Made by a program: the position numbers and the translations under genes
The notes under the pieces: model-generated
What the model was told of the DNA's origin: nothing
What the model saw: only the letters and a program-made list of their open reading frames with translations
Database searches by the model: none
Shown: positions 1-25,680 of the stretch, one piece after another
Position numbering within the stretch: position 1 is the stretch's first letter
Layout of the letters: each line of letters opens with the position of its first letter
Assembly: GCA_002269645.1 (NCBI GenBank)
Contig: NIVC01005107.1
Location: forward strand, 1-26,196
Direction: 5' to 3'
Source of the DNA: Macrostomum lignano
Lineage: Eukaryota
DNA length: 26,196 nt

Positions 1-92
1 CCTTGATACAGAATCAAAGGTGAGATTCTTAATATTCATTGCAAGGGTGAGTTCGAAGCGCAAGCCTCACCAGTCAGCCTCTCCTCTACCAG

Positions 93-235
93 GCGCATTC
101 TTCTGTCTAAGTACCTACCTGAGCTGGCGGACGCCGACCTGAGAGTCGAACCCGGCCCTGCTGGATCGGCCGGCGAACGGCGGCGTTCGAACTAAACTGG
201 AGACCGTGATTGTTCGGCCGCGGCAGCTCATGTCC
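93..235 (+). CDS. Probable upstream AC exon (end of C1a domain), apparently frameshifted
   Basis: Acceptor ctctcctctaccAG at 91-92 and donor GTGAGT at 236. Frame from 94 reads RILLSKYLPELADADLRVEPG (resembles C1a GRVHIS...EVEPG) but stops at 193-195; the +1 frame reads KLETVIVRPRQLMS and ends in phase 0, matching exon 965. Confidence 0.45.
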
Positions 236-339
236 GTGAGTTGGAGCAGAGAGAAGATGAAGGGTTCCCACTGATTTTTTAAGTTCGGCGAGATACCTAG
301 TAACGGGAACTAGGTATAATGAGTCGATTTAAATATAGC

Positions 340-905
340 ATAGCAACCATAGCAACCAACAGCGACCGCATAGCAATGCCAGCAAGAGCAGAACAACAAC
401 ATAACAACCGCATAGTAACCGCATTGAAACCGCATAGAAACGCATAACCGCAGAGTGATCGGATAGTAACAACATACAACCGCAAACAACGGCATAGCAC
501 CACATAGCAACCGCAAAAAAACGGCATAGCAAACGCATAACCGCATAGAAACCGCATAGTAACCGCAGAGTGATCGGATAGTAACAACATACAACCGCAA
601 AACAACGGCATAGCACCACATAGCAACCGCAAAAAAACGGCATAGCAACCGCATAGCAACCGCATAGAAACCGCATAGTAACCGCAGAGTGATCGGATAG
701 TAACAACATACAACCGCAAAACAACGGCATAGCACCATAGCAACCGCAAAAAACGAGCATAGCAACCGCATAGCAACCGCATAGAAACCGCATAGAAACC
801 GCATAGTAACCGAAGAGTGATCGGATAGCAACAACATACAACAGCGTAGCAACCGCGTAGCAACCGTATAGCAACCGCATAGCAACCGCATAGCAAGCAA
901 TAGCA
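340..905. repeat. Composite minisatellite: 11-bp GCATAGCAACC monomers organised in four ~120-bp higher-order units
   Basis: Marker GAGTGATCGGATAG recurs at 453, 568, 687 and 815. Confidence 0.9.
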
Positions 906-964
906 ACCTTCGGGGAAACTATTGGAGCTAAAATTTCTTCCTACAATGTCTTCTTCTATTGCAG

Positions 965-1108
965 TCATCCAAGAGCAGCTCGAGACAGCAGCATCATCTG
1001 GACGAGCGGACCGAAGGACTCAGACGGTTGAGCCAGTTCGCCAATCACCAGTGCGAATCGCCGTTCCAGTACATTGGCGAGACTAAAGTCAACCAGGCTC
1101 AGCGAATG
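965..1108 (+). CDS. AC exon (C1b region)
   Basis: ttctattgcAG acceptor, GTAATT donor, 48 open codons SSKSSSRQQ...NQAQRM, phase 0/0. Confidence 0.75.
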
Positions 1109-4100
1109 GTAATTACCGGGCTGCAAACACTTGATCAAGTTTTTTAGCAAAGCTGAGTAATCAGCTGATTGACTACTCTGACAGCTGGTCAGTTGAATTT
1201 TCAGTGAAAATCGTCAATAGAGTGGTCAGTTGACCAACCCTCTAATCGAACTTCCATTGCGAAGTTTAGCTGACTCCATTTTTAGGGGACCCCGAACCTA
1301 AAAATCTATGGGTAGGTCAATCTAATTATTGACCCCAATCTAATAATCTATAGGGAGGTCAGTTGACCCCCAATCGAATTTTCTAAAGGGAGGTCAGTTG
1401 ACCCCAATCTAATTATCTATAGGGGAGGTCATTTGAACCCCAAGATAATAACCTAAAGGAGAGGTCACTTCACTTTCAATTTAGTTAACTATTGCGAAGG
1501 TCAGTTGACCCCAATATAATAATCTATAGGGGAGGTCAGTTGACCCAACTCATCTTAAATTCGATCTGCTGGCCTCTATCTATCAATTTGTGTAAAAACT
1601 TCACAACTTTAAATGTTAACAAATCTTTCAGAAGCTGACCGAGGAACTTCTGAAGTGCCAGCCCTCAGGAAAAATGTAAGAATCCTAACAACTCGTGGAA
1701 AATGTATTCGAACAAATTTTAAAAGTACATATTCGAACCCACCTCGCAGCAGGAGTTCCGGTGGCAGCTCCAGTCCTCTCATTGGGAACGGGCACGCGGC
1801 TTCGTTCAAAGGCACCGAACTCACCCGCCTGGGCAGCGTCAAGACTTCGTCGACCTCTTCAGGCTGCGGTGGTCAAGTAGCTGCTAGCGGCGCCTCAACA
1901 ACCGTGCTGAGGCGCTGCCGAACCAGCATGAACCCGGTGACGCTGAAGTTCTCAACTCAGGCTAAAGAGAATGAGGTGAGCAGGAGTGCTTAAGTTGAAC
2001 TCGAACCGAAAGTTTGGTTATAGCTTTTGTTTAAGAATTCGAAATTCAGTCTTGACAACAGCTTAGCAAATCGCATGGCAACTGCGTAGAAATAGCATAG
2101 CAACCGCACAGCGACTGCATAGCAATCAAAAAGCATCGGCGTAGCAACCGTGTAGCAACTGTACAGCAAGCGAGAAACGTAATGAAAAAGCAATCAGCAT
2201 AACAACCGCATAGAAACCGTGTACCAACCGCATAGTAACTACATGTACGTAACTCGTAAACAGTAATGAGATAGAAACAGCTATCTCAGCAACCTCAAAG
2301 CAACAGCATAGCAACCGCATCGCAACCGCATCGCAACCGCATCGCAACCGCATAGCAACCGTATGGCAACTGCATAGCAACCACATAGCAACAATATAGC
2401 AACCGCATAGCAACCGCATAGCAATCGCATAGCAACCGCATAGCAATCGCATAGCAACCGCATAGCAATCGCATAGCAACCGTATGGCAACCGCAGAGCA
2501 ACTGCGTACCAACCGCGTTGTAACTAAACAGTAATCAATCAGATAGATACAACCTAGTCTCTACATTGCTTTAAAATAGTATAGCAACCGCTTAGCAACC
2601 CCACAGCAACTGCATAACAACCGAGTAAAATAATAGTTTGAATCGGTCTCGCCCTAAACAGTACAAAAAAACGACGAAAAGATGTCATTCATTTTGCTTA
2701 GAATTTATTCGCTAAATACATTGCAACTGAAAACTCAAACAAACAATTCCAGTACCACAGACAGGAGGATCACACATTCGGAGCGGCAATGCTAGCGGCC
2801 CTATTCATTTTGCTAATTAGCGCCAGCCTTCAGGCTTCAGTGCTGCCCAGGTGAGCTCTTCGCGGAGAAAATGTAGAGATGCTGTTAAAAGCTGTTTTAA
2901 TTAATTATTAATGAACCCTTCCCCATTTTAGAACCATGCTGCTATTGCTGCTATTCATGATTGCGTTCACCTGGATTGGCATGATGCTCATGGTGTTGCT
3001 GGCTGCCAGGCTTAAGGTGAGCAAATTCAAATCAAGTTTGAGTTGGACTCCAATGAACCGCTCCATGCACCTATCTTGTCCCAGATTTGAAGGCCTTGAA
3101 CGGATGGCTTGTTATGTCACACAAGCGCGCGGATGCGTACGCAGTCATACGCACAGGCACACACTCACACAGGAGTGTACAGCGGCCCTAACTTTATTTA
3201 TCGTTAGTCATGTACACTTCACTGTCCTTAGGGTTGGCCTTCAAAGGTGTTAATTGCACGAGCAGAGCCAAGCCGAGATTCCAATTCTGCCTTAAATTAA
3301 TGTGACTGCACTTGGAATCGAGCCTGGGCCGCTGGCACATCAGAGCGCCGAGTTGGACCACTGGGCTATAAGATATTGAATGGCAGTTACTTTAATCTAT
3401 ACCTGTAGAAATTTATGCACCCCATCAACTATGCAGAGATTAATTGAACAATTTCATTGGTGATTAAGTCACGCGTGAAAGAATCTAAATTCACTGTACA
3501 CAATGCAGTAATTGTGAAAACAACCAATTTCCAATCGACAGTGCCTGGAATTCAACATTCAGAGCTCATTCGTCATACGAGTGGTTGTCATCATTACTTC
3601 GGTTCTGTTTGTGTACGCCGTATCGCAGGCCAATGTGGTGAGCTGAGCTGGCGTTTAGTGCTGTCGGGCTTGGGCTGGAGGTGGTTTTAGGATTTTCAAC
3701 CGAATTTATTGATTATTTGGCATCGGTTTTCAGTTCTGCTGCCGTTCGACAGTGGGCAACAGGACCACGTACGGCCCGATTCTGCAGGACTCGGACAACT
3801 CACTGGAGCTGCAGTGCCCGCTGCCGGACTTCATTTACCTGTCTGGCACCCTCTGCCTGATCTTGGTGGCTGTGTTCGCATCGCTGCCCTCCTTCATCAA
3901 GCTGTTCCTGCTCGTGGCCGTGTCCACCACCTTCGGCCTGACTGTAGCTGTCACGCATCGTCCGCTGTTCTCGCTGGTTGACTCCGATGTCAGAGGGCTG
4001 GCGAGTCTGTCCGGTCTGGCCGCCTCCGCTCACGACATGTCAGCTGGCCCTGTGCCAACCTTTGTCTGGGGCCTCGTCTGCCTGACCGCTTTCTCCATCT

Positions 4101-7100
4101 TGATCTTCGTGCACTCTCGGTTTCACGAGTTCGCCCAGCGACAGGAGTTCCAGTGGAAGTCGCAGGTGAGCTTCCATGATAGCCTAGAGTTTTAGCCTAG
4201 TGGCTAGAGCGTCGGAATTGAGACTGAAAGGTCCGGGGTTTCATTCTCGACCCACTCGTAACAATCTATAGTCCTTGACTTCTTGAGCAAGGCATTTAAC
4301 TCTGCATTGCTTCAGATCACCCAGCTGTAAAATGGGTGCCAGCATTAGCTGGAGTAATTCTAGGGGATCTTTGGACTGAACAGCCGTACGCAACCTTCAG
4401 ATTTACTCGGGCTCGAGCTGTCGGTTGCACATCTGCCCATTAGAAGATGGAATAGGAGAGGAGAGGGAGGGGATTAGAGAGTAGGGAGCTGAGAAGAGAC
4501 ACAAACCCTGAGCGGCCCAGATTGCCATTGTGAAGTTTCAAAGGACCCGAGGGCCGGATAGAAAGGCTTTGTGGGCCGGAGTTTGCCGATCCTGAATAGC
4601 AAATGAATCACATATTTGCTTCTCCTGTGGTAAATTCAAAATGTTTTTTTAGAGAAAAAGTTTAAATAATAGTATGGGGTAGCGGAAGCTCTCACAATTC
4701 TGTTGTGTTTTAATTGAGGATTTTGCAAAGATTTTCTTTTTAATAGAAAAATCAACATTTCTACTTAGCAGACTTACAACCCTCGTACAGCCCAAATCGA
4801 ATCATTCTCTTTCATTTTTAACGAATATTTTTTCAGTCCGCCGAGAACCAGCACGACATGTTCCTGGTGAAGGAGGCCAGTTGCTGTTTGCTGAAAAATC
4901 TGCTGCCGCAGCACGTTGCGCTGCATTTCACGGATACGACTTATCGAAATCCTGTGGTGAGTACAGCTGGTAGCGGGTTTCACTTATTTAATTAATCTAA
5001 TCTATTTAAATCAGCTGATAGCAATGATAGAAATATCCTATTCGAGTGTAACGTCAAGTGCAATTCACCAGAAGAATAGGAGCTCGACTTTTTCTGACAA
5101 ATTTATTCATAGACAGCTTATTCATATTTACATAGGGAACTTGGCATGTAGTGTATATTGATAGAATAAGAGGCACAGATAGAGAGGGTTACACAGACTC
5201 GAGGTCAGTTGCCAGGCCACGAATTATTATAAGCATAACTCCGACGCGCAACGACGAAGCGTCGCACTAGAGGCCCGAAATGCCCTCCCCTCATCCACTC
5301 TGGCCCAGCAAACCTTACCGAATGCCTTGATGGATGGGGCATGCCAAAGCCAAAGCCTGCCCCTGCCACCGAGTGCCGGTGGGGTTTGCCGGTTGTTGCG
5401 CAGGGAATGAAGCCGAAAAAAGCGACGCGGAACTATAGGAAAAACTTGCCCGATTCCTCATCAATATATGCATATCTGCGCGTGCCTCGCGTGCCCGCAT
5501 TCGAGCTTGGGTGAGTCATCAGAGCTAGCTGGAGAGGAGAAAACTTCACTATGGCTGGGGGTTTCGGGAGTTTGACGCGCGCGGTTTCGGTAGCAGTCAT
5601 AACTTCGGTTCCCCAGTTGGGAGTATGCTGGGCTGAAGCCGGGAAAGCCTTCGAGTTTCGACCTGTGCAGCAGGGAGCCAGAGGGATGTGGAGTGCGTAG
5701 GAATTTCACAAAAAGCTAGAAAACCGTTTTTACTGACAGAGAAGCTCAGGGGTTAAGGCGTTTGACTCCAGGCACCAAAGTACCTGGGCCACACAAATTT
5801 GAGGCTCGTGAAAAAATTTACCTGACGTTTGGCACGAAAAATCGCCCATGAGGGCCAAAGCCCCAGGTCACAGAGTGAGAAATGCCTGCCAATGAGAAAG
5901 TCAGGGCCGTCTGTACATCCTGTGGATTTTTGCCTGCATTTCCGTGCGCCTTTGTGTGCTCTTTTGATGCCCTCCCCTAACGTCTCTCGCCAACACAGGA
6001 TCTGTACGCCCAAGAGTACCAGCTGCTGGGCATCCTGTGGGCCAATCTACCGGATTGGCAGCCAGCTCCTGGCACTGAGGCTCCCCTGCTTGTCCAGGAG
6101 AGCATCCGGGTGCTCAATGACGTCATCTGCGAGCTGGACGAGCTAATTCAACGTGCCGACCGACACCAGGAGCTCGTCAAAGTGCGCACAGTTGGGGAAA
6201 ACTATGTAGTAGCTGTTGGCATGAATCCGCAACTGCAGGACAACCCGGCCAGCAAGCTGTTCCACCTTACCGGTCTGGTCCAGCTGGCCCAGCTGATGCG
6301 CCGCAGGGTGGCTGAACTCAACGCCACACTGTACGAGGATCGCATCCGTATGCGGGTTGGCATCGACCTCGGACCCGGCTTCTGCGGCGTGGTCGGCGGC
6401 TCCAGGCCAGTTTTCGACATCTGGGGCCAGGCAGCATCTATTTCGAAAGTGCTGGCCTCAGCGGCCGGTCCCGGACAGATCCTAGTGTCCGAACGTGTGC
6501 ACCGGGTGGCTCAGCAGCAGTTCGACTTTACCGAGCATTCGTCGCACAACGTTGACGGCTTGCGAGTTCGCGCCATGGTGCTGCGCGAGGGCCGACCGGC
6601 CACGTCCTCTAGCCGAAATTCTCAAGTGACTGTAAATTCCACTGGCTTCCGTCAGCATCAAGGCAGTCAGCAACACCATCATCAACCGAGCCGCCGACAA
6701 AATAGCCCGCTAGAGTCGCCACAAGAAGCTTTCTCGGTGCTACAGGCCGGAGTCTCCAATAACATTTACTCTGCCCACTGCGGCAGCGGTTCCGGCCTCA
6801 AGCCGATACCCGAGACGCACACACGGAGCGTGGTCGCTGCTGAAACGCAGACGCCGACTCTGCCACCGCCGCCTCCGCCACCTCAACTTCAGCCTCAGAT
6901 TCAACCGCAGCCTCACCAGCAGAAGCCGCAGAGGCCTCGAAGAATTAGCGACACCGTTGCCAGTAGGTCATCCCTGAGCAGTTTCCTCATGCACGAGAGT
7001 GCCGCCTTTCAGTCGGCGGCTAGGCATCCGCCGGGTGACACGCTCGATCAGATTGTCACCTCTGACGAAGATGAAGTAGCAACTGAGGCTACGGACAACG

Positions 7101-9761
7101 CCGCTGCAGTCAGCGCTTCGGCTACCGCCTCTGCTGAGATGCCGGGGCCGGTGAGCCACAGAAACCCGCTGTACACTGACACTGAGTACGATTCTATGGC
7201 TGAGAGTAGCGCAAACATCTTCATGGAGATGGCGGCTGTGAAGTCATCGGCTCCCGTGCCGCCTCCGCCGCGACCTCCACGTGGCAGTCACGGTCATAGC
7301 ACCAGCATGACGCGATCGAACTCCGACACCAGTGGACATCACCAGTCTCAGCCTCAGCACCAATACCGGCCTCCTCCGCCAGTAGCCGCAGCTCGCGCTT
7401 CTGGAAAGTCTCGCACCTCAGCAAGCCCATCAGCCGAAGGTAGCCAGCGCAGCACGCCCAGTGCCCGTCACCTAGACTTCCCCGAGTATACGCGCCCGAG
7501 TCCTCCGATCTTGTCGCCAGCCAGTCGGCTGAGTGACTCCTCTGGAGGTAGCCGTTGCGGCGCTGGAGGCTTGAAGACTTCACCGCCATCAGACACGGCT
7601 GGGGCCACTTTGTCGCTTCCACCAATTGAGGCACCGATCTCTACAGCGTCCGCGACATCAACCAGCGCAGAACCCTCGCAGCGTTCAAACGCAGCCGCCA
7701 ATACTGGCTGGGAAACGACGAACACATGCAGCGGCTCTACTGTGCCTCCAGTACTGTTCCGATTGGCCAAGGAACGCAGCGGAGCGTTCCGACTGGCGCC
7801 AGTAGCTCCACCGACGACTTCAAGTAGTGGCATCGGCGGAGTAGCGTCTGGCGGTGCGGCTGTTGGCGACTCGCTGCTTTCACTGGTCTCCGACTCCATT
7901 GGTGGGGGTCTGACCAGCGGTGACGAGGACGACAACACAGATGGAGGAGTCAGCGGTCGCGGCGGTCGCGATGGCGGCTGCGACACAGACCTGGATGCAC
8001 TTCGCGGCCTGCAGAGCGACGACGGCGAGATCAGCGACGTTCTGGTGAGCGACATCGACGAGGACTGCACCAACTTTTTCCAATACGTGCCGCAGGCGTA
8101 CAGACCGTCGGCGCCGCCGTCTCTGCAGACACCGACAGCGGCAACTGCGGCAAACGACATCGGTAGTGACAGTCGATTTAGAGGGAACTGCAATGCAGGT
8201 ATGACCTTACCTTTTTATTTAAATTATAGTGTGTAAAGAAACGGTTTTTAATAGTTCAATGAACTCCAAAAACATTGAACCAGGAGAGCCAGAGGCAGCA
8301 CTGATGCGCGCCTGGCCAGAAGAGGCAGCCGCTGCCGCCCTCTCTGACGCGGACCCGTCCTACTGCGAGCCTCCGGTCACGGCATCGTACCCTCCACCCG
8401 GGTCAGAGCCGCCGACGCCGGTACCCGCGCAGCGTCGGCTGCCGCAAGTGGCGCCGGTTGGCCTGCCGAACTTTGGCTTTTTACCGCCGACTTCCACTGC
8501 AAGCGTGGCCATCTCTAGCGAAGATCTTGGCAGAGTAAGCGACGGAGAAGTCCTGTTGACGCCATTGAACGCCGGACGTAGATTGCCAGCTCCGAGACCG
8601 CGCCAGCCCAGGCAGAAAACTGGAGAATATGACAACGGCGGAGACACCGACTTCGACGAGTACGGCTACGAAACTAGAGCCGAGGATGACGAAGATGAAG
8701 AGGAGGCTGGCTATTCGTGCGATGTTCCGTCGAGCGCGTACGAAACGCACTCTGAGGCGGAAGATGCGCCAGGGCTCAGGCGCAGCTTTGGCTACAACGG
8801 GTACAGCGGCCACCGGGGTGGCTATCAGAACGGCTTCGGCCGGCTGTTGCAGCCGCCGCATCAAGCTTCCTCACTGACGCCGAACGACACAACTTCGACG
8901 CCGGCATCCAAGAAGTCCGACTACGACAACATGACCGACGAGTCCGACTTCCCGCAGCGGCTGCGAGCTGCCGGTCTGCCGTTTGCTATCGGCAGCGGCA
9001 TGGAAGACAGCTTTCACGAGCGCATCGCCGCGGAGGCACGTCGAATTAGCAGCGTCTTCCGGCGCGACTTCTGCATGCCGGACGGAGCAGACTTATCCGA
9101 GGGCGAGGTGCCCGACCGGCTGTGCCACCGGCAGACTCTTGCGGCGCTGTTGGCTCCGATGCAGCCCACAGAGCAGCAGGGGAAGCAGCAGGCGCTGCCA
9201 GTGCCGCTTCAGCGGGGCAACTCGCACGATCGGACTCGGCCATCCAGCGGCCTGTCTATGTTCGGCTCGCTCGACCGGGCCAGTCGAGGTCAGAACTCGA
9301 CCCCGGGTCAGCCTCGCTTCCGAATGCATCATCAACAGCCGCTGCAGCACCAGTCGGCCGTTGCTGTCAACGGAACATCGCCAGATTGCGCCCTACGACG
9401 GGCATCGAGCCTCGATCAGCTGCAGGCCGCAGTCGCCAACGCGTCGGCGGTCGCCGCCGCCGCGGCTACCCTGGAGCTAGGCGCCGACGCCGACGCGGCC
9501 GACTTGGCCGCACGAAACGGCGTCATTAATGGGCAGGCGCGCGGACTGCCGCAAAGTTTCCAACGGTTCGTGGCTCGTCACGGCAAAATGCGCAGCGTCC
9601 TGCCACCGGAGCTGCAGCGCTACATCCTGCCCGGCTGCATCAGCAGCAGCTCTCTGGCCACCAGCGTCGAGTACCCGAGCGATCCGAGCATGCAGTACAG
9701 CGCCTACGAATCCGAGTACGATAATTACTATTACGAACCGAGAAAGTCCACAGTGGTATAA
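965..9761 (+). CDS. Transmembrane adenylyl-cyclase-like protein, 3' part (C1b, M2 helices, degenerate C2, long tail); join(965-1108,1632-1675,1753-1975,2753-2850,2932-3016,3542-3637,3734-4165,4837-4956,5999-8198,8284-9761); 5' end outside window
   Basis: Ten GT-AG exons whose phases chain without a break (4920 nt, 1639 aa plus stop). AC hallmarks: MNPVTLKF..ENEY (start of M2), hydrophobic TM exons, LLKNLLPQHVALHF, DLYAQEY, LNDVICELDEL, MRVGIDLGP..GVVG..RPVFDIWG. Subtype not assigned. Confidence 0.9.
1185..1550. repeat. ~35-bp minisatellite with AGGTCAGTTGACCC core
   Basis: AGGTCA at 1356, 1391, 1426, 1462, 1498 and 1533, with degenerate copies at about 1187, 1223 and 1314. Confidence 0.85.
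1632..1675 (+). CDS. AC micro-exon (44 nt) KLTEELLKCQPSGK
   Basis: tctttcAG acceptor, GTAAG donor; phase 0/2 is exactly what is needed to join exon 965-1108 to exon 1753-1975. Confidence 0.7.
1753..1975 (+). CDS. AC exon ending RTSMNPVTLKFSTQAKENE
   Basis: CAGCAG tandem acceptor (start 1750 or 1753), GTGAG donor at 1976; conserved pre-M2 motif. Confidence 0.8.
2060..2630. repeat. 11-bp CATAGCAACCG tandem array, same family as 340-905
   Basis: Near-perfect core at about 2305-2520 with degenerate flanks. Confidence 0.9.
2753..2850 (+). CDS. AC transmembrane exon YHRQEDHTFGAAMLAALFILLISASLQASVLP
   Basis: ttccAG acceptor, GTGAG donor, hydrophobic helix, phase 0/2. Confidence 0.85.
2932..3016 (+). 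CDS. AC transmembrane exon RTMLLLLLFMIAFTWIGMMLMVLLAARLK
   Basis: ccattttAG acceptor, GTGAG donor, phase 2/0, hydrophobic helix. Confidence 0.88.
3310..3370 (-). mobile_element. tRNA-Glu-derived SINE head or tRNA pseudogene fragment
   Basis: Minus strand TAGCCCAGTGG (A box) ... TCGGCGCTCTGATGTGCCAGCGGCCCAGGCTCGATTCC closely follows tRNA-Glu(CTC) TCGGCGCTCTCACCGCCGCGGCCCGGGTTCGATTCC; no intact acceptor stem. Confidence 0.6.
3542..3637 (+). CDS. AC transmembrane exon CLEFNIQSSFVIRVVVIITSVLFVYAVSQANV
   Basis: cgacAG acceptor, GTGAG donor, phase 0/0, hydrophobic helix. Confidence 0.85.
3734..4165 (+). CDS. AC exon encoding the last M2 helices to EFAQRQEFQWKSQ
   Basis: ggttttcAG acceptor, GTGAG donor, 144 codons with three hydrophobic segments and an AC-type R.EF.WK.Q motif. 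Confidence 0.88.
4191..4600 (+). mobile_element. tRNA-derived CORE-SINE-like element
   Basis: A box TAGCCTAGTGG at 4193-4203, degenerate B box GTTTCATTC at 4238-4246, then CTTGAGCAAGGCATTTAAC...CTGTAAAATGGG resembling the CORE domain; the 3' part includes a 34-bp block shared with 19932-19965. Right boundary approximate. Confidence 0.65.
4837..4956 (+). CDS. AC exon SAENQHDM...LLKNLLPQHVALHF...RNPV
   Basis: tttttcAG acceptor, GTGAGT donor; LLxNxLPxHVAxHF is the conserved pre-C2 coiled-coil motif. Confidence 0.9.
5999..8198 (+). CDS. AC exon: C2 cyclase-homology domain (about 5999-6583) plus Ser/Pro/Ala/Gln-rich tail
   Basis: caacacAG acceptor, open for 2200 nt, GTATGA donor at 8199 (phase 1). 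Confidence 0.9.
8284..9761 (+). CDS. AC terminal exon, low-complexity acidic/Pro-rich tail ending EYDNYYYEPRKSTVV*
   Basis: An 85-nt AT-rich intron (8199-8283, GT...ccAG) joins the two long ORFs in phase 1; stop TAA at 9759-9761, followed by a switch to AT-rich sequence. Confidence 0.85.
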
Positions 9762-10636: not shown

Positions 10637-12264
10637 TCAGATCTTGTTATCGGTGGTAGAGGTGGTCTGGTTAGTAGCTTTGCTGTTGTTTGTGCACTTG
10701 GTAGTCGCGGTGTTGGCCTTAGGCGATCCTTTGTCGCGCTGGCAGAAGATAGTTTGGATCACTGCCAGCCGGATTTGCCGATTGCTCAGGTGCACCAAAA
10801 TGATGACAGCCGAATGCAGGTGAGCCAGCCAAGTTACGAACAGGTGAACCCGGGGCGGAACCACAGTGTTGCTGACGTCCACCAGAATGACAACAGTGTA
10901 GGGTATCCAGCAGACGCAGAAGGCTACGATCATAGCCAGCAATGTACGGCAAGCTCGTGCTGTCTCTCGCCAGACAGCGCTTGGTCGAGGCGTTGGCTTG
11001 TCCAGATGAGACGTGACGGCGGCGAGAAGGCGAAGCTTTGTAGAGTGAACCTTGACTAGGACTTTTATATTAGCGGCCAGCATCAGAGTCAGCGGGAAAG
11101 AGATCAGACCGACGCCGACAAAGAATGTGTACGACGAGGACGCCGTTCTCTGCCAAGCGCAGCTCTCGCTTTTCCGATCGTAGAAATGGCCGCCCCAACC
11201 GAGAAAGTTACCAGCCTCGGCTGTCAGGCTCAGCACCCAGCACAGGCAGCACTGCACAATGGCCTTTCGTCGGCTGAATAGGCTCTTGTACATTCGGTTG
11301 TGACAGATGAATACCGTTCTGGATGCGGTGATGCAGCCCAGACTGAAGAAGGCGCAGAAGCAGGCTGTCAGGCACAGCGAAGCGACCAGAGTGCAAAGTT
11401 CAGGTCGCTCAGTCAGATATTTTTCGCCTTTAATGGCAGCTGGAGGGGAAACGGAGACGCTTTTTACATTCAAGTAGCTTCGTTTCGACTGTGTCTCAGG
11501 TACTATGTCAGTGTGTTATTGTGACTCCAGCGACGTGTCTTCTTGGACCTACCAGACTTAAGACTTGATCGATGCATCCTTGACCCACAAAAGACCCAAA
11601 ACTAGCTCCAGTGATGTGTCTTGAATACCCTAAGACCCACGACTCAAGCGATGCATTCTTCAACCGCGCCTAAGACTCAAGACTCCAGTGATGCATCATT
11701 GACCCACCTAAAACACAGGCCTCCAGCAATGTACCATTGACCCATCAAACCCCTAAGACTCCAGCGATGCATCATTGATCCGCCTAAGACCCAAGACGCC
11801 AGGGATGGTGTATCGTTGGCCCACCTAAGACCCAAGACGCCAGGGATGGTGTATCGTTGGCCCACCTAAGACCCAAGACTCCAGGGATGGTGTATCGTTG
11901 GCCCACCTAAGACCCGAGATCAACTGAGATTCGAGCAGATAGGACACGACAGCCAGTTAATTCTGACCTTACATACACTGTTCAATAGCAACAGCAACTC
12001 ACCGACAATGCACAGAGGATCGGCCAGTCCAGTGACGCACAGATCAGCCAAGCACATGTTGGCCATGAACTCCCGGCCAACCTTCTGCACATCGGGCCGA
12101 GCCAACAGGGTAATAAAAATGGCGATATTGCCTAAAAACCCAATGACCATGGCGAGGGAAGTCAGACTCACGTAGGGATAGAAAACAATGGGATCAGAGT
12201 CGATCAGAGCTGGTAGGTGCTCAAAAGCAGTCTCCAGTTCGGTAACCGTATCGTTAGCAGTCAT
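10637..12264 (-). CDS. Class A (rhodopsin-family) GPCR, invertebrate melatonin-receptor-like orphan; join(12264-12003,11439-10637), 354 aa
   Basis: Seven hydrophobic segments; TM1 GFLGN, TM2 NMCLADL, TM3 ...SRTVFICH, ECL2 GWGGHFYDRKSESC, TM6 CWIPY. GTGAG donor (12002) and cctccAG acceptor (11440) join in phase 1. N-glycosylation sequon NDT near the N-terminus. Ligand unknown. Confidence 0.85.
11520..11920. repeat. ~41-bp minisatellite in the GPCR intron
   Basis: CTAAGACCCAAGACGCCAGGGATGGTGTATCGTTGGCCCAC occurs three times nearly perfectly (about 11785-11915), with progressively degenerate copies leftward. Confidence 0.9.
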
Positions 12265-12820: not shown

Positions 12821-13550
12821 GATGAGGCAGATGCAGCTCGACTGGACTATACCAAAGCAGATGCAGCTGAGGCAGATGCAGCTGAGGCAGATGAAGCTGA
12901 GACAGATGAAGCTGAGACAGATAAAGCTGAGACAGATGCAGCTGAGACAGATGAAGCTGAGAAAGATGAAGCTGAGGCAGATGAAGCTGAGGCAGATGCA
13001 GCTCGACTGGACTATACCAAAGCAGATGCAGCTGAGGCAGATGCAGCTGAGGCAGATGAAGCTGAGACAGATGAAGCTGAGGCAGATGAAGCTGAGGCAG
13101 ATGCAGCTCGACTCGACTATACCAAAGCAGATGAAGCTGAGACAGATGAAGCTGAGACAGATAAAGCTGAGACAGATGCAGCTGAGACAGATGAAGCTGA
13201 GAAAGATGAAGCTGAGGCAGATGAAGCTGAGGCAGATGCAGCTCGACTCGACTATACCAAAGCAGATGCAGCTGAGGCAGATGAAGCTGAGACAGATGCA
13301 GCTGAGACAGATGCAGCTGAAGCAGATGAAGCTGAGACAGATGCAGCTGAGACAGATGAAGCTGAGGCAGATGCACTTGAGGCAGATGAAGCTGAGGCAG
13401 ATGCACTTGAGGCAGATGAAGCTGAGGCAGATGAAGCTGAGACAGATGCAGCTGAGGCAGATGAAGCTGAGGCAGATAAAGCTGAGACAGATGCAGCTGA
13501 GACAGATGAAGCTGAGAAAGATGAAGCTGAGGCAGATGCAATTGAGGCAG
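12821..13550. repeat. 15-bp tandem array (GCAGATGAAGCTGAG variants) with four 30-bp variant units
   Basis: Variant GCAGATGCAGCTCGACT(G/C)GACTATACCAAA, with GCTCG at 12836, 13001, 13106 and 13241. Confidence 0.95.
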
Positions 13551-14269: not shown

Positions 14270-14940
14270 CTGCATCTGGTGTCAGGTACTCTACATTGAA
14301 TGTCAGGTACTTTACATTGAGTGTAAGGTACTCTAAAGTGGGTGTCAGGGACTCTGCATGTACATCAGGTGCTAGGGGCTCTACATCAGGTGTCAAGGGG
14401 CTCTATATCAGGTGTCAAGGGCTCCACATGAGGTATCAGGGGGCTCCACATCAGGTATCAGGGGGCTCTACATCAGGGGTCAAGGGGCTCTACATCAGGT
14501 GCCAGGGGCTCTGATCTACATCAGGTGTCAGGAGGCTCTACATTGGGTTTCAGGAGGCTCTACATATACATTGGGTGTCAGGAGGCTCTACATATACATT
14601 GGGTGTCAGGAGGCTCTACATATACATTGGGTGTCAGGAGGCTCTACATATACATTGGGTGTCAGGAGGCTCTACATATACGACGTACATTGGGTGTCAG
14701 GGGGCTCTGCGTTGGGTGTCAGGGGGCTCTGCATTGGGTGTCAGGGGATCTACATTGGGTGTCATGGGGCTCTACATTGGGTGTTAGGGGCTCTACATTA
14801 GGTGTCAGGGAGCTCTACATTAGGTGTCATGGGATCTACATTGGGTGTCAGAGGGCTCTACATTGGGTGTCAGGGGGCTCTGCATTGGGTGTCAGGGGAT
14901 CTACATTGGGTGTCAGGGGGCTCTACATTGGGTGTCAGTG
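14270..14940. repeat. 21-28-bp minisatellite (GGGGCTCTACATTGGGTGTCA family)
   Basis: Degenerate left flank, 28-bp variant with an extra ATATAC in the centre (about 14560-14700), 21-22-bp units on the right. Confidence 0.9.
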
Positions 14941-15021
14941 TCTCTATAAACCGGATTTGATCGCCAGTCAGCCTCTAAACCGGACACCAGGCTCAAAAAA
15001 TCTTCAGTCAGCTCCAGTCGA

Positions 15022-15660
15022 TCACTCTGCCGCATCAGGCAGAACCTCGATCTCCAGGAAGATGACATTGTCGCGCAGGTAGCAGCACTCATCCGAGCCG
15101 CCCTCTGGCCGCAGCAGTTCGTGTGCCGCGAACTTCGGAAATCCAAAACCGAACGCGGCCGAAGCGTCCCTGCCTGGCCGTTTGAAATGCCGCCAGCTGG
15201 GATCCGGGGTGAAGCTCTCCTCCAGGTGACGCCGCGATCCAGCCGACCCGTCCCTCTGATCCAGCAGTCGCATTCGAATCGGTCGAACGAACGGCCAGTC
15301 CAGAATGGGATCGAACTCCCCAGGTAGCAGCTTCACGTAGAGCGACAGGTAGCGACCTGCGCCGCTGCCGTTTCCGTTGAGAAAGGCGGAGGCCTGCAGC
15401 CGATAGCCCGGTCTGCCAGTGTAGAACGGCACGCTGCAGAACTCCAGCTCCCGGTTGGAAGTCGAGTCTGCCAGCTTCTCGGCGTAATTGTCCACCCGCC
15501 AGACCAGGCGACCAGAGTGCACCAGCGGCAGGTGACGCAGCTGGCGCTTCAACGAGTCCAACTCCCGGCGCTGGGCTCGACCCAGTTCGGCCAGCAAGGT
15601 CACGTGATGCGCTGACGCCGCCGGGTCGCGCTGGTGCCGATCGACGGAGGCTCGATCGCC
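15022..15660 (-). CDS. TRAF4: TRAF4 exon 7 (coiled coil plus MATH domain)
   Basis: 639 nt to TGA at 15024-15022; the acceptor is an AAG after a C11 tract, so the exact start is slightly less certain. Confidence 0.9.
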   Translation of the reverse strand, partial: GDRASVDRHQRDPAASAHHVTLLAELGRAQRRELDSLKRQLRHLPLVHSGRLVWRVDNYAEKLADSTSNRELEFCSVPFYTGRPGYRLQASAFLNGNGSGAGRYLSLYVKLLPGEFDPILDWPFVRPIRMRLLDQRDGSAGSRRHLEESFTPDPSWRHFKRPGRDASAAFGFGFPKFAAHELLRPEGGSDECCYLRDNVIFLEIEVLPDAAE

Positions 15661-18600
15661 CTTGAAGTTCGGGGGGGGGGGCGTCGCAATAGAATGAATC
15701 GAGGAGGACGAAACACTTCAACATTGTGTACAATTTGCGCAAAAGTTAGAAATTCGCTTTCAAATGCATTGTCGAGAGGGACATTCTCTTCAATCTCGAA
15801 TCTCTAGGTATCTTTTCTCTCGATCCAAATTCTAGACCCTTGGTTCCATTCCATGCAAAAGTCCATGTGGGCGTGTGTCTCGTACGAATCCTTACGTATT
15901 GTGTAGTAGCCGAAACCACCTGCAAACTAAGTTAGTGAACCTTCTGGATCAGAGGCTCAGTTCTGCACTTCTTGATCCGGAACCATCTAGACCTGTGTTA
16001 GTGTACATCGTAGCACTAGATCCTCACACTTCTAAATCTCTATCACTAATCCCTTAGGATTATGCAAGCATCTCACCTTGAACTGGCAGCCGCACCATTT
16101 CAACGGACAGTCGATCGGAGGCGCTCCTCGGACTCTGCCACCGTCAAGACATTCAGCGGAGGCCGCCCTCCTCGGCACGGGTGGCGGTGCCTCGGCTGAG
16201 GCTTCCGGCTGCTGCCTTCGCTGGCTGTTGAACTGCGGGTTCACCCCGCCGCTGTCGGGCTTGTCCAGCGTGGACTCCGGGGTCACCGCCAAGTGACTGG
16301 TGCCAGTTCCTGAGGAGTTCTTGCCCACTGCGCTGAGAATGGCCGCGTCGTTTGATGAGGAATTTGACGTTGATGTCGAAGTGTTGTACTGCGGCTGCTG
16401 CTGTTGCTGATGCTGCTGATGATTGCTACTGTGGCTTTGCTGACCAGAAACTGGAGTGGTCACACCTTTCAGTGTGCACTGCTGAATATGAGTCTGTGAG
16501 TGTTGGCAATTTGGTTTGAAGGATTATTAGTATTGGGAATATCTTTATAATGAGCTCTATGGCTTTAGGGATGGGATCTATGGCTTTAGAAATGGGATCT
16601 ATGACTTTAGAGATGGGATCTATGGTTTTAGAGATGGGATCTATGGCTTTAGGGTTGGGATCTACGGCTTTAGGAATGGGATCTATGGCTTTAGGGGTGA
16701 GATCCATTGCTTTAGAGATGGGATCTATGGCTTTAGGGATGGTATCCATGGCTTTAGGGATGGGATCGATGGCTTTAGAGATGGAATCTATGGCTTTAGA
16801 GATTGGATCTATGGCTTTAGGGATGAGATCTATGATATCTGTGGGGTTGGGATGAACTATTTTTCTTCTATGATTTTTTTGTCAGGATTTGGTTTCCTCG
16901 AGCAGGATCGAGTACTCGTTTTTTCTAATTTATGAATAGCAGCTTATGTAGGTGTGACTGAAGTTCGAACCCAGGACCACAGCAGCAGCCATCACAAACC
17001 AACCTGCAGCGTGTCGAACAGGAACCGCTTCCGGCAGAAGCTGCAGCCGACCTCCCGCTTGACGCATTCGTGCTCAGCGTGCCTGGCCAGCTTCCTCCGC
17101 GGAATCCGCAGGCCGCACTTGTTCTCGCACCACACCTGCTCGTCTGGACAGGTGCCTTCGTGCTTCTGAAAGCCAGTTTTTTACAAGGTGTAGGGCTGGT
17201 TACCTGTGCGGGCTATACTAACTATACTACTCAAGACTTGGGATTCGATTGAAAGTTGGCATTCCAATGAGAGATTTTTTGCGTTTCGGAGAGAATTTTA
17301 GATTCAGGATTCAGGATCTGAGATTTGGGATTCAGGATCTGAGATTTGGGATTCAGGATCTGAGATTTGGGATTCAGGATCTGAGATTTGAGATTCAGGA
17401 TCTGAGATTTGGGATTCAGGATCTGAGATTTGAGATTCAGGATCTGAGATTTTGGATTCAGAATCTGAGATTTGGGATTCAGGATCTGAGATTTGGGATT
17501 CAGGATCTGAGATTTGAGATTCAGGATCTGAGATTTGAGATTCAGGATCTGAGATTTGGGATTTAGGATCTGAAATTTGGGATTCAGGATCTGAGATTTG
17601 GGATTCAGGATCTGAGATTTGAGATTCAGGATCTGAGATTTGGGATTCAGGATCTGAGATTTGGGATTCAGGATCTGAGATTTGGGGTTCAGGATCTGAG
17701 ATTTGGGATTCAGGATCTGAGATTTGGGATTCAGGATCTGAGATTTGGGGTTCAGGATCTGAGATTTTGGATTCAGGATCTGAAATTTGGGATTCAGGAT
17801 CTGAGATTTGGGATTCAGGATCTGAGATTTGAGATTCAGGATCTGAGATTTGGGATTCAGGATCTGAGATTTGAGATTCAGGATCTGAGATTTGGGATTC
17901 AGAATCTGAGATTTGGGATTCAGGATCTGAGATTTGGGATTCAGGATCTGAGATTTGAGATTCAGGATCTGAGATTTGAGATTCAGGATCTGAGATTTGG
18001 GATTTAGGATCTGAAATTTGGGATTCAGGATCTGAGATTTGGGATTCAGGATCTGAGATTTGAGATTCAGGATCTGAGATTTGGGATTTAGGATCTGAAA
18101 TTTGGGATTCAGGATCTGAGATTTGGGATTCAGGATCTGAGATTTGAGATTCAGGATCTGAGATTTGGGATTCAGGATCTGAGATTTGGGATTCAGGATC
18201 TGAGATTTGGGGTTCAGGATCTGAGATTTGGGATTCAGGATCTGAGATTTGGGGTTCAGGATCTGAGATTTGGGATTCAGGATCTGAGATTTGGGATTCA
18301 GGATCTGAGATTTGGGGTTCAGGATCTGAGATTTTGGATTCAGGATCTGAAATTTGGGATTCAGGATCTGAGATTTGGGATTCAGGATCTGAGATTTGAG
18401 ATTCAGGATCTGAGATTTGGGATTCAGGATCTGAGATTTGAGATTCAGGATCTGAGATTTTGGATTCAGAATCTGAGATTTGGGATTCAGGATCTGAGAT
18501 TTGGGATTCAGGATCTGAGATTTGAGATTCAGGATCTGAGATTTGAGATTCAGGATCTGAGATTTGGGATTTAGGATCTGAAATTTGGGATTCAGGATCT

Positions 18601-21277
18601 GAGATTTGAGATTCACGATCTTATAACAGGCATCCTTACTGGGTATTCCTCAGCGCTGAAGCTGTTCCTACAGAACTGACACAGGCGTCGCCTCCTTGAG
18701 CAGGCATGATCGACGTGCTCCTTGAGAAACGCTCTGCACACCATGTCCCCGCAGTTCTGGGGGCAGAGCACCGCCACGTAGCGGCAAGTCTCCAGGTGGC
18801 TCTGCAAGCCGGTTTGAGCAGAGTGAATACGATTGCAATCGTGACTCCAGTTCCAGACCGAGGATTAGTTTGCGTCCTCGGGTTACAGGTTTAGGTTGGG
18901 AAATATTGATGTTTGAATAGGAGCGCTCTGAGGTGTGTCGGGTTTCATGAGTTTCACTTTATGCCTACGAGGTTTGCCTCAAAAAGCAAAAAAACTTTTG
19001 GAGCAAAAGCATGTTGGAAAAGTCTAACAACTATTGGCGCCAGAGTCAAACATCTATTGGCGCCAGAGTCAAACAACTATTGGCGCCAGAGTCAAACAAC
19101 TATTGGCGCCAGAGTCCAAACAACTATTGGCGCCAGAGTCAAACAACTATTGGCGCCAGAGTCAAACAACTATTGGCGCCAGAGTCCAAACAACTATTGG
19201 CGCCAGAGTCAAACAACTATTGGCGCCAGAGTCAAACAACTATTGGCGCCAGAGTCCAAACAACTATTGGCGCCAGAGTCAAACAACTATTGGCGCCAGA
19301 GTCAAACAACTATTGGCGCCAGAGTCCAAACAACTATTGGCGCCAGAGTCCAAACAACTATTGGCGCCAGAATCAAACAACTATTGGCGCCAGAGTCATT
19401 GCACCAGAGTCAAGTATTTATTGGCGCTAGAATCAAGCATCAGGATTTGTTATCGGCACAGCAGTTCATGGATTTTAGCTCTGGGATATTAAGGCTCTCA
19501 ACCGCGGCAAAAAATACGAAATAAAAATGTTGGGTAATAAATGCACAAGCAAAGAGAAGAGAAACAGACACTTGAAGAGACGAAGTGAAGGCAAGATAAT
19601 TAAGCGTACACACGGTGCTACACAATGGAGCGAGTGTATGTAGCATGTACATGCAAAGAGAGGAGGCAAGAGAGTAAAGAGAACTAAATAATAAGATCGT
19701 ATACAGTAACTTTCAGCCGCGAGGTTGTCCATAGAAATATCATAAAGGCAGGTCGGGGTTGTTCGTAAGAACTGCTTAGCAAACATTTGGACTCGTTGAA
19801 GATGGATTCAAGTTGAATTCCACTGGATATTAAGAAAGAATAAGGAGAAGTGATTGAAACACTCAGTGTAAAGAAGATGAAAGAGGAAATAAGAGTAAGA
19901 GGGAATAGAGGGGAGAGGGGACAGATGGGATGATTGCCATTGTGAAGTTTCAAAGGACCCGAGGGACGGATGGATAGAGAGGAGAGGCTTCGCGGGCCGC
20001 ATGTGGGCTCTGGGAACAGGGAGTCGTGAATGCAGTTTGGACGTGAGCAATGCAATAGGGGAATGGGTCTGCATTTCTGATGCGCAATAAATTGCATGAA
20101 ATTCATCGCTGACAATAAGCTACCCACGCTCAGATCAAAATAGAAAGTATCTGAACTCAATCAGACCATAAAATCTGTTGAGTGCAGCAATAAAGGAATC
20201 TATCCGAGACAAAAGACTACATTTTTTCATAGACGTAGGCTTAACGCTTCAATGACGAATTCCTATCTGTAGTTATCTGTGTACGATATGAGTACCTTTC
20301 AGTTTTTAGATATTTACCATGCATTTCCAATGGCACACGAAGAAAGACCCGAGGACTCCAAAGAATTTCTATAAAGTATCAATTTTTCATGTTGTAGATT
20401 CCAAAGGTCCCTTCGAAAGTGACGCTGCTCTATTTTTTTACCTTTATGGCAGCGTTTCTTGCTGCTGTTGAAATTTTATGCACCTTATGCTGCTTTTTGG
20501 ATGGTGATAACACTGATTGTGATAACTAAATACTGAATGATCAGGGAAAAATGTCATGAAGGCACCGTCCCTGGACATTCACCACTCTCTCACCATATCA
20601 TGCGTTACTCACCGGCACATTTCGGACGATGTCAACCCAGCGACAGCCTTGAGGCTCCTGTGGACATCGAACCATGCAGTTTTCAATTTGGTTGCTCAGT
20701 TCAACGCTGCTTTTCACCTGGTGAATTGATTGGAAATTACCTAATAGAGTGTCTTTGGCGGTTACTGTCGGCGCAAACATTTGACTAATTAAAAAGACAT
20801 TGAGAGGTAATTCCTGGTATCTCAGAGAGGCGATTATAGGTCTCTAAAGAACGATTTCAGGTCACTCTGTCACTCTGGGGCGATTCTTGGTTACTCATGG
20901 GGCAATTCCTATAGGCAGTCTAAGGGGCGATTGTTGCTCACTTTGAACAGCGATATGATTCTCAGTCTTACATTCCTACTATCCACTCGTTGTTCATCCA
21001 ATGGGCACATCAGGCTCGAGTCCAGGTCCAGTGATGCACGATTGTGACTGAAATATAATAGGAAATTTTCATGCTATCGTCTCTACATGATCTAGACAGC
21101 AGAGCACAATAAATCTACTCACCTGTGACCTCGTCTATGCCTCGGTCGTAGACAGGAGTCGCAGAACACGTGCTGACAGGAGGTCAAAACTACTGGAGCC
21201 TGCATCGGCAGCTTGCAGATCGGGCAGATGCACTGCTTCGGCACGCTGTCCACGAAGAAATAAGTGTAGCCAGGCAT
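15022..21277 (-). CDS. TRAF4: TNF receptor-associated factor 4 orthologue; join(21277-21123,21047-20972,20717-20613,18801-18640,17165-17004,16493-16077,15660-15022), 571 aa
   Basis: Starts MPGY.Y.F, RING (CPICKLPM..P....CQHVFCDSC...MCPLD), TRAF zinc fingers (CPQNCG, CENKCG), coiled coil and MATH domain (FYTGRPGYRLQASAFLNGNGSGAGRYLSLY..LPGEFD..LDWPF; FTPDPSWRHFKRP; FGFPKF). Exons 3-5 are 105/162/162 nt, matching vertebrate TRAF4 exon sizes as recalled. All phases chain. Confidence 0.92.
16077..16493 (-). CDS. TRAF4: TRAF4 exon 6 (expanded, low-complexity)
   Basis: 417 nt; begins THIQQC, ends CPLKWCGCQFK; cactcacAG acceptor and GTGAG donor. Confidence 0.8.
16550..16850. repeat. 21-bp minisatellite (TGGCTTTAGGGATGGGATCTA) in TRAF4 intron 5
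   Basis: About 14 degenerate copies. Confidence 0.9.
17004..17165 (-). CDS. TRAF4: TRAF4 exon 5 (zinc finger), not in the ORF track
   Basis: 162 nt, KHEGTCPDEQVWCENKCG...CSFCRKRFLFDTLQ, ctttcAG acceptor and GTTGGT donor. Confidence 0.9.
17301..18620. repeat. 21-bp tandem array (GATTCAGGATCTGAGATTTGG), about 63 copies, in TRAF4 intron 4
   Basis: Highly homogeneous; a few single-base variants recur at 567-bp spacing. Confidence 0.97.
18640..18801 (-). CDS. TRAF4: TRAF4 exon 4 (zinc finger)
   Basis: 162 nt, SHLETC...CPQNCG...CQFC, gcttgcAG acceptor and GTAAG donor. Confidence 0.9.
19025..19430. repeat. 23/24-bp array (ACAACTATTGGCGCCAGAGTCAA) with a 70-bp higher-order period, in TRAF4 intron 3
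   Basis: The 24-bp variant AGAGTCCAAA falls at 19111, 19181, 19251 and 19321. Confidence 0.95.
19880..20000 (+). repeat. Dispersed repeat fragment shared with the SINE-like element at about 4445-4580
   Basis: 34-bp identity GATTGCCATTGTGAAGTTTCAAAGGACCCGAGGG (19932-19965 = 4520-4553), both preceded by GA-rich tracts. Confidence 0.7.
20613..20717 (-). CDS. TRAF4: TRAF4 exon 3
   Basis: 105 nt, VKSSVEL...RCPQEPQGCRW...VP, ttcaccAG acceptor and GTGAG donor. Confidence 0.85.
20800..20960. repeat. Degenerate short tandem repeat (GGCGATT cores) in TRAF4 intron 2
   Basis: Five to six GGCGATT/GGCAATT/ACGATT cores at roughly 22-45-bp spacing. Confidence 0.4.
20972..21047 (-). CDS. TRAF4: TRAF4 exon 2 (HNRASLDLDSSLMCPLDEQRVDSRN), not in the ORF track
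   Basis: tatatttcAG acceptor, GTAAG donor; supplies the final RING CPxD. Confidence 0.85.
21123..21277 (-). CDS. TRAF4: TRAF4 exon 1 (RING N-terminal part)
   Basis: ATG at 21277, GTGAG donor, phase 2. Confidence 0.9.
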
Positions 21278-25032: not shown

Positions 25033-25115
25033 TGTCTGCATTGTTTGTGAAAATCCAACAGTCTACCTACAGCGCTTACTGATTAACTTGGCTAGTGTTG
25101 CACCGGTCTACCAAA

Positions 25116-25680
25116 ATGCAATTCTGTAACGGCATGCACCGCCTAGCTGCAGTGCTGTTCATTGCGCTCGTCGTGCTTTGCTTCACTTCGGCGAATGCCA
25201 GTCGCCGCAAATGGCGCAGTCTGCACCAAACAGCATTCGGAGAGGCTGATGGTCAGATGGAGTGCGGCAGGCAGTTTCACGACATCCAGTCCAAGTGGCT
25301 GCAGTCGAAGTTGGTGCTGCGGGCTCTCAATTGGCAGATCATTGAATCAGCAAGCGCCTCTCATCGATTCAATCTAACCATTGTGGTCCACTCGGTGCTG
25401 AAAATTGGAGGCTCCAAATCTGGTCCCAGGCTACGAATCAGCAATGGCAGTCGCATCACGGTGGGAGAGTTCAGCGGCGCACTTTCAAGACGGCAGCGAT
25501 CTCGACAGAGACAGCAGTGCACGCCTAGCCGACTCCGCAGCAACGACAAGGGCTACATCTTCTTCCTGAAGCCGACGCTGGACCCGACATACTTTAAGCA
25601 CAGTTTCCTGCCGATAAAGTTCCGCTCCAGGAGGTTGCGCAAGTTCGACCGAGTCAGCTGTGGACGTCGAAACCGATGTC
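25116..25680 (+). CDS. First coding exon of a secreted neuregulin-2/GGF2/vein-like EGF-family ligand (signal peptide plus N-terminal domain); continues beyond window
   Basis: Signal peptide MHRLAAVLFIALVVLCFTSANA. YIFFLKPTLDPTYFKHSFLPI...SC resembles the recalled NRG2 N-terminal segment YIFFLEPTEQPLVFKTAFAPL...LC. Phase-1 GTAAG donor at 25681 fits a following Ig exon. Start could be ATG 25116 or 25134. The EGF domain is not visible in the window. Confidence 0.7.

Follow-up and report, generated by a model that had tools for sequence, protein, structure and literature searches.

The window analysed here, a 26,196-nucleotide stretch of DNA from the free-living flatworm Macrostomum lignano (contig NIVC01005107.1), carries a gene for a membrane adenylyl cyclase (AC) whose second cyclase-homology domain, C2, is essentially certain, from its sequence, to lack the canonical catalytic set. 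The encoded protein is likely to be unable to make cyclic AMP (cAMP) at a normal rate, and it appears probable, although with less assurance, that the gene specifies a cyclase with dead or crippled catalysis that has been kept as a pseudoenzyme for a non-catalytic role. The evidence comes from the identity of the C2 domain, the state of its catalytic residues, the placement of the gene within the cyclase family and the uneven way in which the different regions of the protein have diverged.

The frame that begins at the splice acceptor at position 5999 (cacag/GAT) stays open for 745 codons, and its first 200 codons encode a class III nucleotidyl cyclase domain. This domain matches Pfam PF00211 over residues 3-187 with an expectation value (E) of 4.1e-26 and 92 bits, against a cutoff of 21.9. 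In a phmmer search of the PDB, an AC8 entry came first (whole-sequence E 2.4e-34), the top stretch being its C2 (domain E 1.2e-22), followed by the C2 domains of AC5, AC9 and AC2, with C1 domains scoring far lower. An AlphaFold2 model (predicted local distance difference test 83.4, predicted template modelling score 0.82) was built on an alignment with 16 canonical C2 sequences, and is for that reason no independent proof of the fold. In Foldseek, the model gave template modelling scores to AC2 C2 chains of 0.77-0.79 when normalised to the query and 0.84-0.87 when normalised to the target; matches to AC2 C2, Rv1625c and AC9 reached E values of about 1e-16, and the target-normalised range of 0.84-0.87 applied to the single-domain chains of AC2 C2 and Rv1625c. 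The domain retains its structural glycines, the helix alpha2' core (R37, L39, N40, D47 and L49) and the beta-hairpin GPGFCGVVGGSRPVFDIWG; we take the helix core to belong to the helix that contacts Gs-alpha and the hairpin to be the dimerisation arm, as a lead only. By these similarities the domain is the C2 of a membrane adenylyl cyclase, and the statement of an earlier note on this DNA that the motifs of the C2 fold persist is borne out by Pfam, by phmmer against the PDB and by alignment. The same note had set the span of the domain at 5999-6583; the start coincides with the exon acceptor, while the end does not stand, as the frame continues to a splice donor at 8198/8199.

Class III transmembrane adenylyl cyclases (tmACs) have a single active site at the interface between C1 and C2, to which C1 supplies two metal-binding Asp residues, Asp396 and Asp440, and one Arg, Arg484. 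The contribution expected of C2 consists of five residues, of which Lys938 and Asp1018 act on the adenine base, Asn1025 on the ribose and Arg1029 and Lys1065 on the phosphates and the transition state (PMC6005667 Table 1; PMC3591389). HMMER, run exhaustively against 1.84 billion representative proteins, returned 9835 matches, and the best 149, with the flatworm protein itself excluded, were aligned with MAFFT by their matching domain. Within this set the pentad K938/D1018/N1025/R1029/K1065 reads KDNRK in 141 of 149 homologues; in the window it reads RDSVD, and Asp1018 is the only one of the five that is kept. The four substituted residues (R, S, V and D) are each absent from the corresponding column in all 149 homologues, and the pattern is therefore far beyond chance. 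The motif that holds the D1018, N1025 and R1029 positions is DIWGQAASISKVL, and helix alpha4 is rewritten throughout, from TVNVASRM to AASISKVL. The N1025 position (Asn in 147 of 149 homologues) is occupied by Ser (6437, TCT), and the R1029 position (Arg in 145) by Val (6449, GTG), with a Lys at 6446, one residue ahead of the lost Arg. At the K1065 position, where 142 homologues have Lys, the charge is reversed by an Asp (6554, GAC), and the second Lys of the VKGKG motif has become Leu (6560, TTG).

Most of these substitutions had been proposed in the earlier note, and the codons together with the alignment confirm K938R at 6185, the retention of D1018, N1025S at 6437 and R1029V at 6449. An alignment that would bring Asn and Arg to the catalytic positions, named there as the counter-evidence to look for, was not seen, since Ser and Val occupy them. 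The exception was K1065, which the note had read as Leu at about 6560. This is wrong: K1065 corresponds to the first Lys of VKGKG, because the offsets D+7 = N, N+4 = R and R+36 = K in an AC2-like sequence give the published numbering, and its counterpart in the window is the Asp at 6554, a more severe substitution than the Leu proposed.

The failure to make cAMP at a normal rate, which the earlier note had considered probable, is the most likely reading of this domain, because four of the five residues are replaced, their roles are established and, in mutagenesis by Yan et al. in 1997, a single change of N1025 or R1029 in AC2 reportedly lowered the turnover number (kcat) 30- to 100-fold. It is in keeping with this that C2 has drifted fastest in the protein, as described below.

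The substitutions might instead be an artefact of sequence or annotation, produced by an assembly error, by a wrong frame or by a canonical alternative C2 exon elsewhere. The closest match of the HMMER search, UniRef100_A0A1I8GG26 from M. lignano, differs from the window in its first 30 residues, and the tail of its model is broken by micro-introns, apparently patches over insertions or deletions. Yet that protein is 100% identical to the window over 207 residues, each changed codon requires two or three base changes, and the substitutions do not come from a frameshift because the frame is continuous through the flanking conserved motifs (..RVGIDLGP..GVVGG..DIWG....S...PG.I.V.E). As regards an alternative exon, tblastn with four full-length group-I cyclases detected a single cyclase-coding segment in the 26 kb. 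We regard an artefact as very improbable.

Upstream of C2, a gene model read from A0A1I8GG26 and from alignments to relatives comprises about 12 exons, which encode the end of C1, the C1b linker, six transmembrane (TM) helices, a helical linker, C2 and a tail of about 1025 amino acids (aa). The earlier claim of an intact frame for a membrane AC is upheld by these upstream exons, in which six hydropathy peaks correspond to the six TM segments. From the end of C1 through C2, this architecture matches that of the group-I cyclases (Drosophila rutabaga, mammalian AC1/AC8 and protostome AC1-like proteins); the helical linker is of equal length, and the tail resembles that of rutabaga, of about 1000 aa. 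All but one of the 20 nearest nameable relatives are protostome AC1-like, type 8 or Ca2+/calmodulin-responsive (rutabaga) proteins, the exception being AC9-like; no flatworm appears among these 20 in databases with almost no flatworm sequence. When the TM region and linker alone were compared by phmmer with 150 retrieved proteins, a Haliotis AC1-like protein was matched with E 1e-60, and the top 17 homologues by this score include 16 named AC1-like, AC8 or rutabaga-type (E 1e-60 to 2e-34). In bit scores, TM plus linker reached 198.7 and C2 120.4, their E values coming from different databases. This places the gene in the group-I (rutabaga/AC1/AC8) lineage. The calmodulin sites of AC1 (in C1b) and of AC8 (in the N-terminus and C2b) are weakly conserved in sequence. 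Word-index protein searches, an index insensitive to relatives at 30% identity, returned nothing for C2, nothing for the end of the tail and one bacterial match (E 9e-7) for the second membrane domain with linker and C2.

Two other group-I cyclases in the alignment depart from the canonical pentad. In Owenia fusiformis (P0126), R1029 is replaced by Lys and K1065 by Arg, with DIYG in the place of DIWG, and in Tachypleus tridentatus (P0090) R1029 is replaced by Cys. Degenerating group-I paralogues may, on this evidence, exist beyond Macrostomum.

Where the flatworm protein differs from its relatives is in the distribution of its divergence. Its C2 is 28-31% identical to those of seven named group-I cyclases, which share 63-82% among themselves. 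Region by region, these seven relatives are mutually 72% identical in C2, 67% in the helical linker and 42% in TM7-12, and the flatworm protein is 29%, 38% and 35% identical to them, respectively; of the columns that are invariant among them, it keeps 38/102 in C2, 16/28 in the linker and 26/33 in TM7-12. Canonical cyclases conserve C2 best and the membrane domain least, an order that is inverted in the flatworm protein. By these measures C2 is the fastest-drifting part, with the membrane domain and a motif in the tail held near normal levels. In spite of this drift, two frames stay open for 745 and 491 codons, for which the chance expected from composition is about 9e-11 and 2e-7, respectively, and the five remaining frames of the C2/tail exon contain 19-31 stops each. 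The GC contents at the first, second and third codon positions of C2 (0.73/0.40/0.71) are of the coding type, and the introns are flat at 0.38-0.50. Because C2 has diverged deeply and yet the frames are open, the GC pattern is that of coding sequence and the membrane domain and tail block are conserved, the data suggest, indirectly, that selection still acts on the protein.

Several observations weigh against the reading of a maintained pseudoenzyme. C1, the other half of the active site, lies outside the window save for its last 25-30 residues, and the structural model of C2, as mentioned, depends on canonical input. Additionally, the replacements of Lys by Arg and of Asn by Ser are chemically related ones, and Lys 6446 sits beside the lost Arg, so that residual or altered activity is possible. 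The protein might in that case still be an enzyme, with Lys 6446 taking the part of Arg1029, Ser that of Asn1025 and Arg that of Lys938, or it might act on another substrate or catalyse another reaction, to which the retention of Asp1018 and of the DIWG hairpin would be suited; other group-I members do tolerate single changes, as in the Owenia and Tachypleus proteins. The flatworm C2, however, would have to accommodate four changes at once, among them a charge reversal from Lys to Asp where phosphate is bound and the replacement of the transition-state Arg by a hydrophobic Val, all to residues absent from those positions in the 149 homologues, and the losses reported for AC2 followed from single mutations. 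A swapped active site, in which C2 would bind the metals, was ruled out, as the positions that would require an Asp/Asp pair are occupied by Asn (6044) and Glu (6197). Retained enzymatic activity is consequently held to be improbable.

The remaining points against a maintained pseudoenzyme concern the gene as a whole. Among the 33 C2 positions conserved in at least 90% of the homologues, 16 are altered, and these are not the catalytic ones alone; relaxation therefore spans the whole domain, beyond the five catalytic residues. Such a general relaxation of C2 fits a pattern also expected of a slowly dying gene, that is, an old and redundant group-I copy under relaxed selection throughout, which has acquired no stop or frameshift yet and has no function. 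The same reading could accommodate the absence of any orthologue above 33% C2 identity (self aside) among the 1.84 billion representatives, the single member in the 90% cluster of A0A1I8GG26, for which no second annotation turned up, and the first part of the tail, in which GC content shows no codon-position bias (0.62/0.61/0.60). The divergence of C2 nevertheless implies a long history, over which more than 1200 GC-rich codons have stayed open while the five alternative frames of the C2/tail exon are closed many times; the splice junctions are canonical GT-AG in 8/8 introns checked, C2 retains its coding-type codon positions, TM7-12 keeps most of its invariant columns and the exact tail block AYESEYDNY survives. 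Taken against these features, a dying gene is unlikely, although less so than a surviving enzyme.

A pseudoenzyme kept for a non-catalytic role is therefore preferred here as the probable explanation. Under the mechanism proposed, a group-I cyclase with 12 TM helices would keep the C2 fold and the C1-contacting hairpin GPGFCGVVGGSRPVFDIWG and would have lost the K, N, R and K of its pentad; the protein would not cyclise ATP at a useful rate, and selection would maintain it as a pseudoenzyme. The parts retained would be the hexahelical membrane domain and the helical linker, together with a C2 that possibly still dimerises or binds partners and a long tail ending in ...STVV. These could allow the protein to localise, to act as a scaffold or to titrate partners of the cAMP machinery, with no output of cAMP. 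Roles as a scaffold, a G-protein sink or a dominant-negative partner, as suggested in the earlier note, are plausible, but localisation, scaffolding or a function of the membrane domain would accord better with the conservation of that domain and of the tail. More tentatively, the rutabaga/AC1-type lineage of Macrostomum may have turned as such into a true pseudoenzyme, in which selection acts on the membrane domain, on the AYESEYDNY block and on the PDZ-ligand-like ...STVV end, and catalysis has been abandoned; this stronger version is possible rather than probable.

In the C-terminal region, the tail block links the flatworm protein to its relatives, with which it has ..SDP..Y..AYESEYDNY in common. 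In BLASTP against 17 proteins, the block is 45% identical over 47 aa to the Owenia protein (E 2e-6), and its identity to the tails of annelid, nemertean and mollusc AC1-like proteins, of 45-57%, exceeds the conservation of C2. The exact 9-mer AYESEYDNY is present in mollusc, nemertean and annelid AC1-like proteins. The flatworm protein ends 10 residues past this 9-mer, without the last acidic block of 50 residues and the ...TDV end of its relatives. A C-terminal end of the form Ser/Thr-x-Val resembles a PDZ ligand. Protostome group-I tails have in common a block of the form ..IS.SS..S..S.SDP..Y.....AYESEYDNYRPG.., and many of the relatives compared end in ...TDV or ...SDV. We know of no function for the conserved group-I tail block.

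Among known systems, the natriuretic peptide clearance receptor NPR-C has lost its cyclase domain and still acts. Together with it, two adenylyl cyclase variants provide precedents for a cyclase scaffold that acts without cAMP or cGMP (cyclic GMP) output: the engineered, catalytically silenced AC6mut, for which cAMP-independent effects are reported (PMC5540275), and the truncated Adcy3-at, described as a rheostat (PMC11971047). The flatworm gene differs from all three, since AC6mut is an engineered point mutant, Adcy3-at a truncated isoform and NPR-C a protein without the cyclase domain, whereas here the gene is full-length and the domain is retained but degenerate. A different likeness is found in the pseudo-heterodimeric class III cyclases, such as the forskolin site of tmACs and the alpha/beta soluble guanylyl cyclase, which also keep the fold and the dimer interface with part of the catalytic set gone, and for which the division of catalytic residues between two subunits has been tabulated (PMC6005667 Table 1). 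In these, one complete site is left, while the flatworm C2 loses residues that it owes to the sole active site and also lacks the two metal-binding Asp residues required for a swapped site. In the literature searched, no natural dead tmAC was found described, nothing specific to M. lignano cyclases was found and no use of the term 'pseudocyclase' was encountered.

Membrane ACs are usually viewed as enzymes whose big membrane domains and tails merely anchor them. According to a preprint from one laboratory, the membrane domains, which are conserved in an isoform-specific manner, have been proposed to be orphan receptors (bioRxiv 10.1101/2022.02.23.481604). If the preferred reading is true, a natural full-length cyclase without catalysis would constitute an evolutionary argument for such non-catalytic functions, as well as a clean test system. 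It would amount to a natural separation-of-function allele, in which the membrane anchor and tail serve a cAMP-independent role, be it that of a receptor, of a scaffold or of a factor that regulates active cyclases. Were the gene instead a decaying copy, it would represent ordinary gene loss in progress. The name 'adenylate cyclase', which A0A1I8GG26 received automatically, overstates the probable activity of the gene. M. lignano is amenable to RNA interference and transgenesis.

With respect to the gene model (Table 1), the window is eukaryotic DNA with GT-AG introns and many tandem repeats. A0A1I8GG26 is a partial model of 1468 aa that maps by tblastn onto positions 94-9284. It begins, as does the window, within the end of C1, of which only the last residues (..LIQNQRRILLSKYLPELADADLRVEPGP) are covered; this final stretch reads ..LIQNQRRILLSK.. 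where the canonical sequence is ..MESGGxPGRIHIS... The C1b exon at 1750-1975 closes with VTLKFSTQAKENE, the conserved entry to the second membrane domain, and within the TM exons the segment LPRTMLLLLLFMIAFTWI pairs in the alignment with LPRTLLLLMLFLASFTWI of the Haliotis AC1-like protein. The start of the helical linker, VHSRFHEFAQRQEFQWKSQ, resembles the GRQQEWTxRLDFLWKxQ of relatives. From VTLKF to the end of C2, alignment with seven tmACs requires few gaps besides two indels in membrane-domain loops. The joined coding sequence of 5999-8198 and 8284-9761 amounts to 1225 codons with a single terminal stop. For the intron that interrupts it, a 31-nt alternative at 8199-8229, which also restores the frame, was set aside in favour of the 85-nt intron at 8199-8283 that A0A1I8GG26 uses. 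For an extra 3' exon, which would supply the ...SDEDYF...TDV end seen in relatives, there was no convincing match, the DNA after the stop at 9759 being AT-rich and closed in all frames. A contig search with A0A1I8GG26 and three open reading frames of the window detected no upstream C1 sequence, no second copy and no transcript contig in a collection with almost no flatworm sequence.

The A0A1I8GG26 model departs from the window in three respects. Its donor at 4108 is a weaker one, at the cost of 19 conserved residues, VHSRFHEFAQRQEFQWKSQ, that match the ..RLDFLWK.. of relatives; its tail hops between frames and contains micro-introns (7085-7162, 7901-7939 and 8499-8525) that the open frame of the window does not need; and its first 30 residues are different. 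The model probably derives from an error-prone contig end.

Table 1. Positions in the window of the exons, domains and catalytic positions of the cyclase gene.
Feature	Position	Strand	Basis and remarks
Putative 3' end of upstream C1 exon (..LIQNQ)	1..19	+	Donor AAAG/gtgaga at 19/20; in-phase join to exon at 93 (AG+G = Arg); tentative
Exon, last strand and helix of C1, RRILLSKYLPELADADLRVEPGP, compared with AC8	93..173	+	tblastn of A0A1I8GG26; acceptor ctaccag/G; 3' boundary uncertain
C1b linker exons 979-1108, 1632-1675, 1750-1975	979..1975	+	Exact A0A1I8GG26 segment matches with GT-AG borders; group-I alignment; first two tentative
TM7, TM8 and TM9 exons 2753-2850, 2932-3016, 3542-3637	2753..3637	+	Introns all gtgagc...ag; hydropathy peaks
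Exon, TM9-TM10 loop, TM10-TM12 and start of helical linker	3734..4165	+	Donor CAG/gtgagc at 4165/4166; alignment, hydropathy
Exon, helical (coiled-coil) linker SAENQHDMFLVKEASCCLLKNLLPQHVALHFTDTTYRNPV	4837..4956	+	Gapless alignment to ...NRxILxNLLPxHVAxHF... of group-I cyclases
C2 cyclase-homology domain	5999..6598	+	Pfam; PDB phmmer; AlphaFold2 and Foldseek
K938 position	6185..6187	+	CGC Arg (VKVRT); Lys in 148/149 homologues, Arg in 0
D1018 position	6416..6418	+	GAC Asp, sole C2 catalytic residue retained; Asp in 148/149 homologues
Helix alpha4 segment, S-I-S-K-V for N-V-A-S-R	6437..6451	+	MAFFT alignment
D-G-L for K-G-K of VKGKG (NVDGLR in the window)	6554..6562	+	Alignment
Low-complexity C-terminal tail, first part, 533 codons, open frame	6599..8198	+	Same exon as C2; donor GCAG/gtatga at 8198/8199; no domain found by Pfam search
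Last coding exon, second part of the tail	8284..9761	+	After 85-nt GT-AG phase-1 intron 8199-8283; stop 9759-9761; protein end ...KSTVV
Conserved C-terminal block LPPELQRYILPGCISSSSLATSVEYPSDPSMQYSAYESEYDNY	9600..9728	+	BLASTP; common to protostome AC1/rutabaga-like tails

Several further features of the window accompany the cyclase gene. An 11-bp satellite (CATAGCAACCG / AGCAACCGCAT) occupies two of its introns, at 338-908 and 2288-2516, and other arrays lie at 1329-1546, 12857-13550 (15 bp x 46) and 14361-14946. On the opposite strand, just downstream of the gene, one open frame (10640-11515; 292 aa) matches the rhodopsin family of G-protein-coupled receptors (PF00001, E 2e-22). A TRAF-like gene follows, also on the reverse strand (15025-21334), with a RING finger at 21122-21334, TRAF zinc fingers at 18616-18864 and 16995-17180 and a MATH domain at 15025-15717 (E 3e-32). 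Between its coding segments are tandem arrays at 17300-18621 (21-bp unit x 63, 94% identity), 19021-19398 (23 bp x 16) and 16556-16834 (21 bp x 13), which produce long spurious frames on both strands. Finally, on the forward strand, an open frame of 220 aa (25083-25742) with a signal-peptide-like start may be the first exon of a further gene; its NRG2_N match is weak, at 24.5 bits where the Pfam cutoff is 27.

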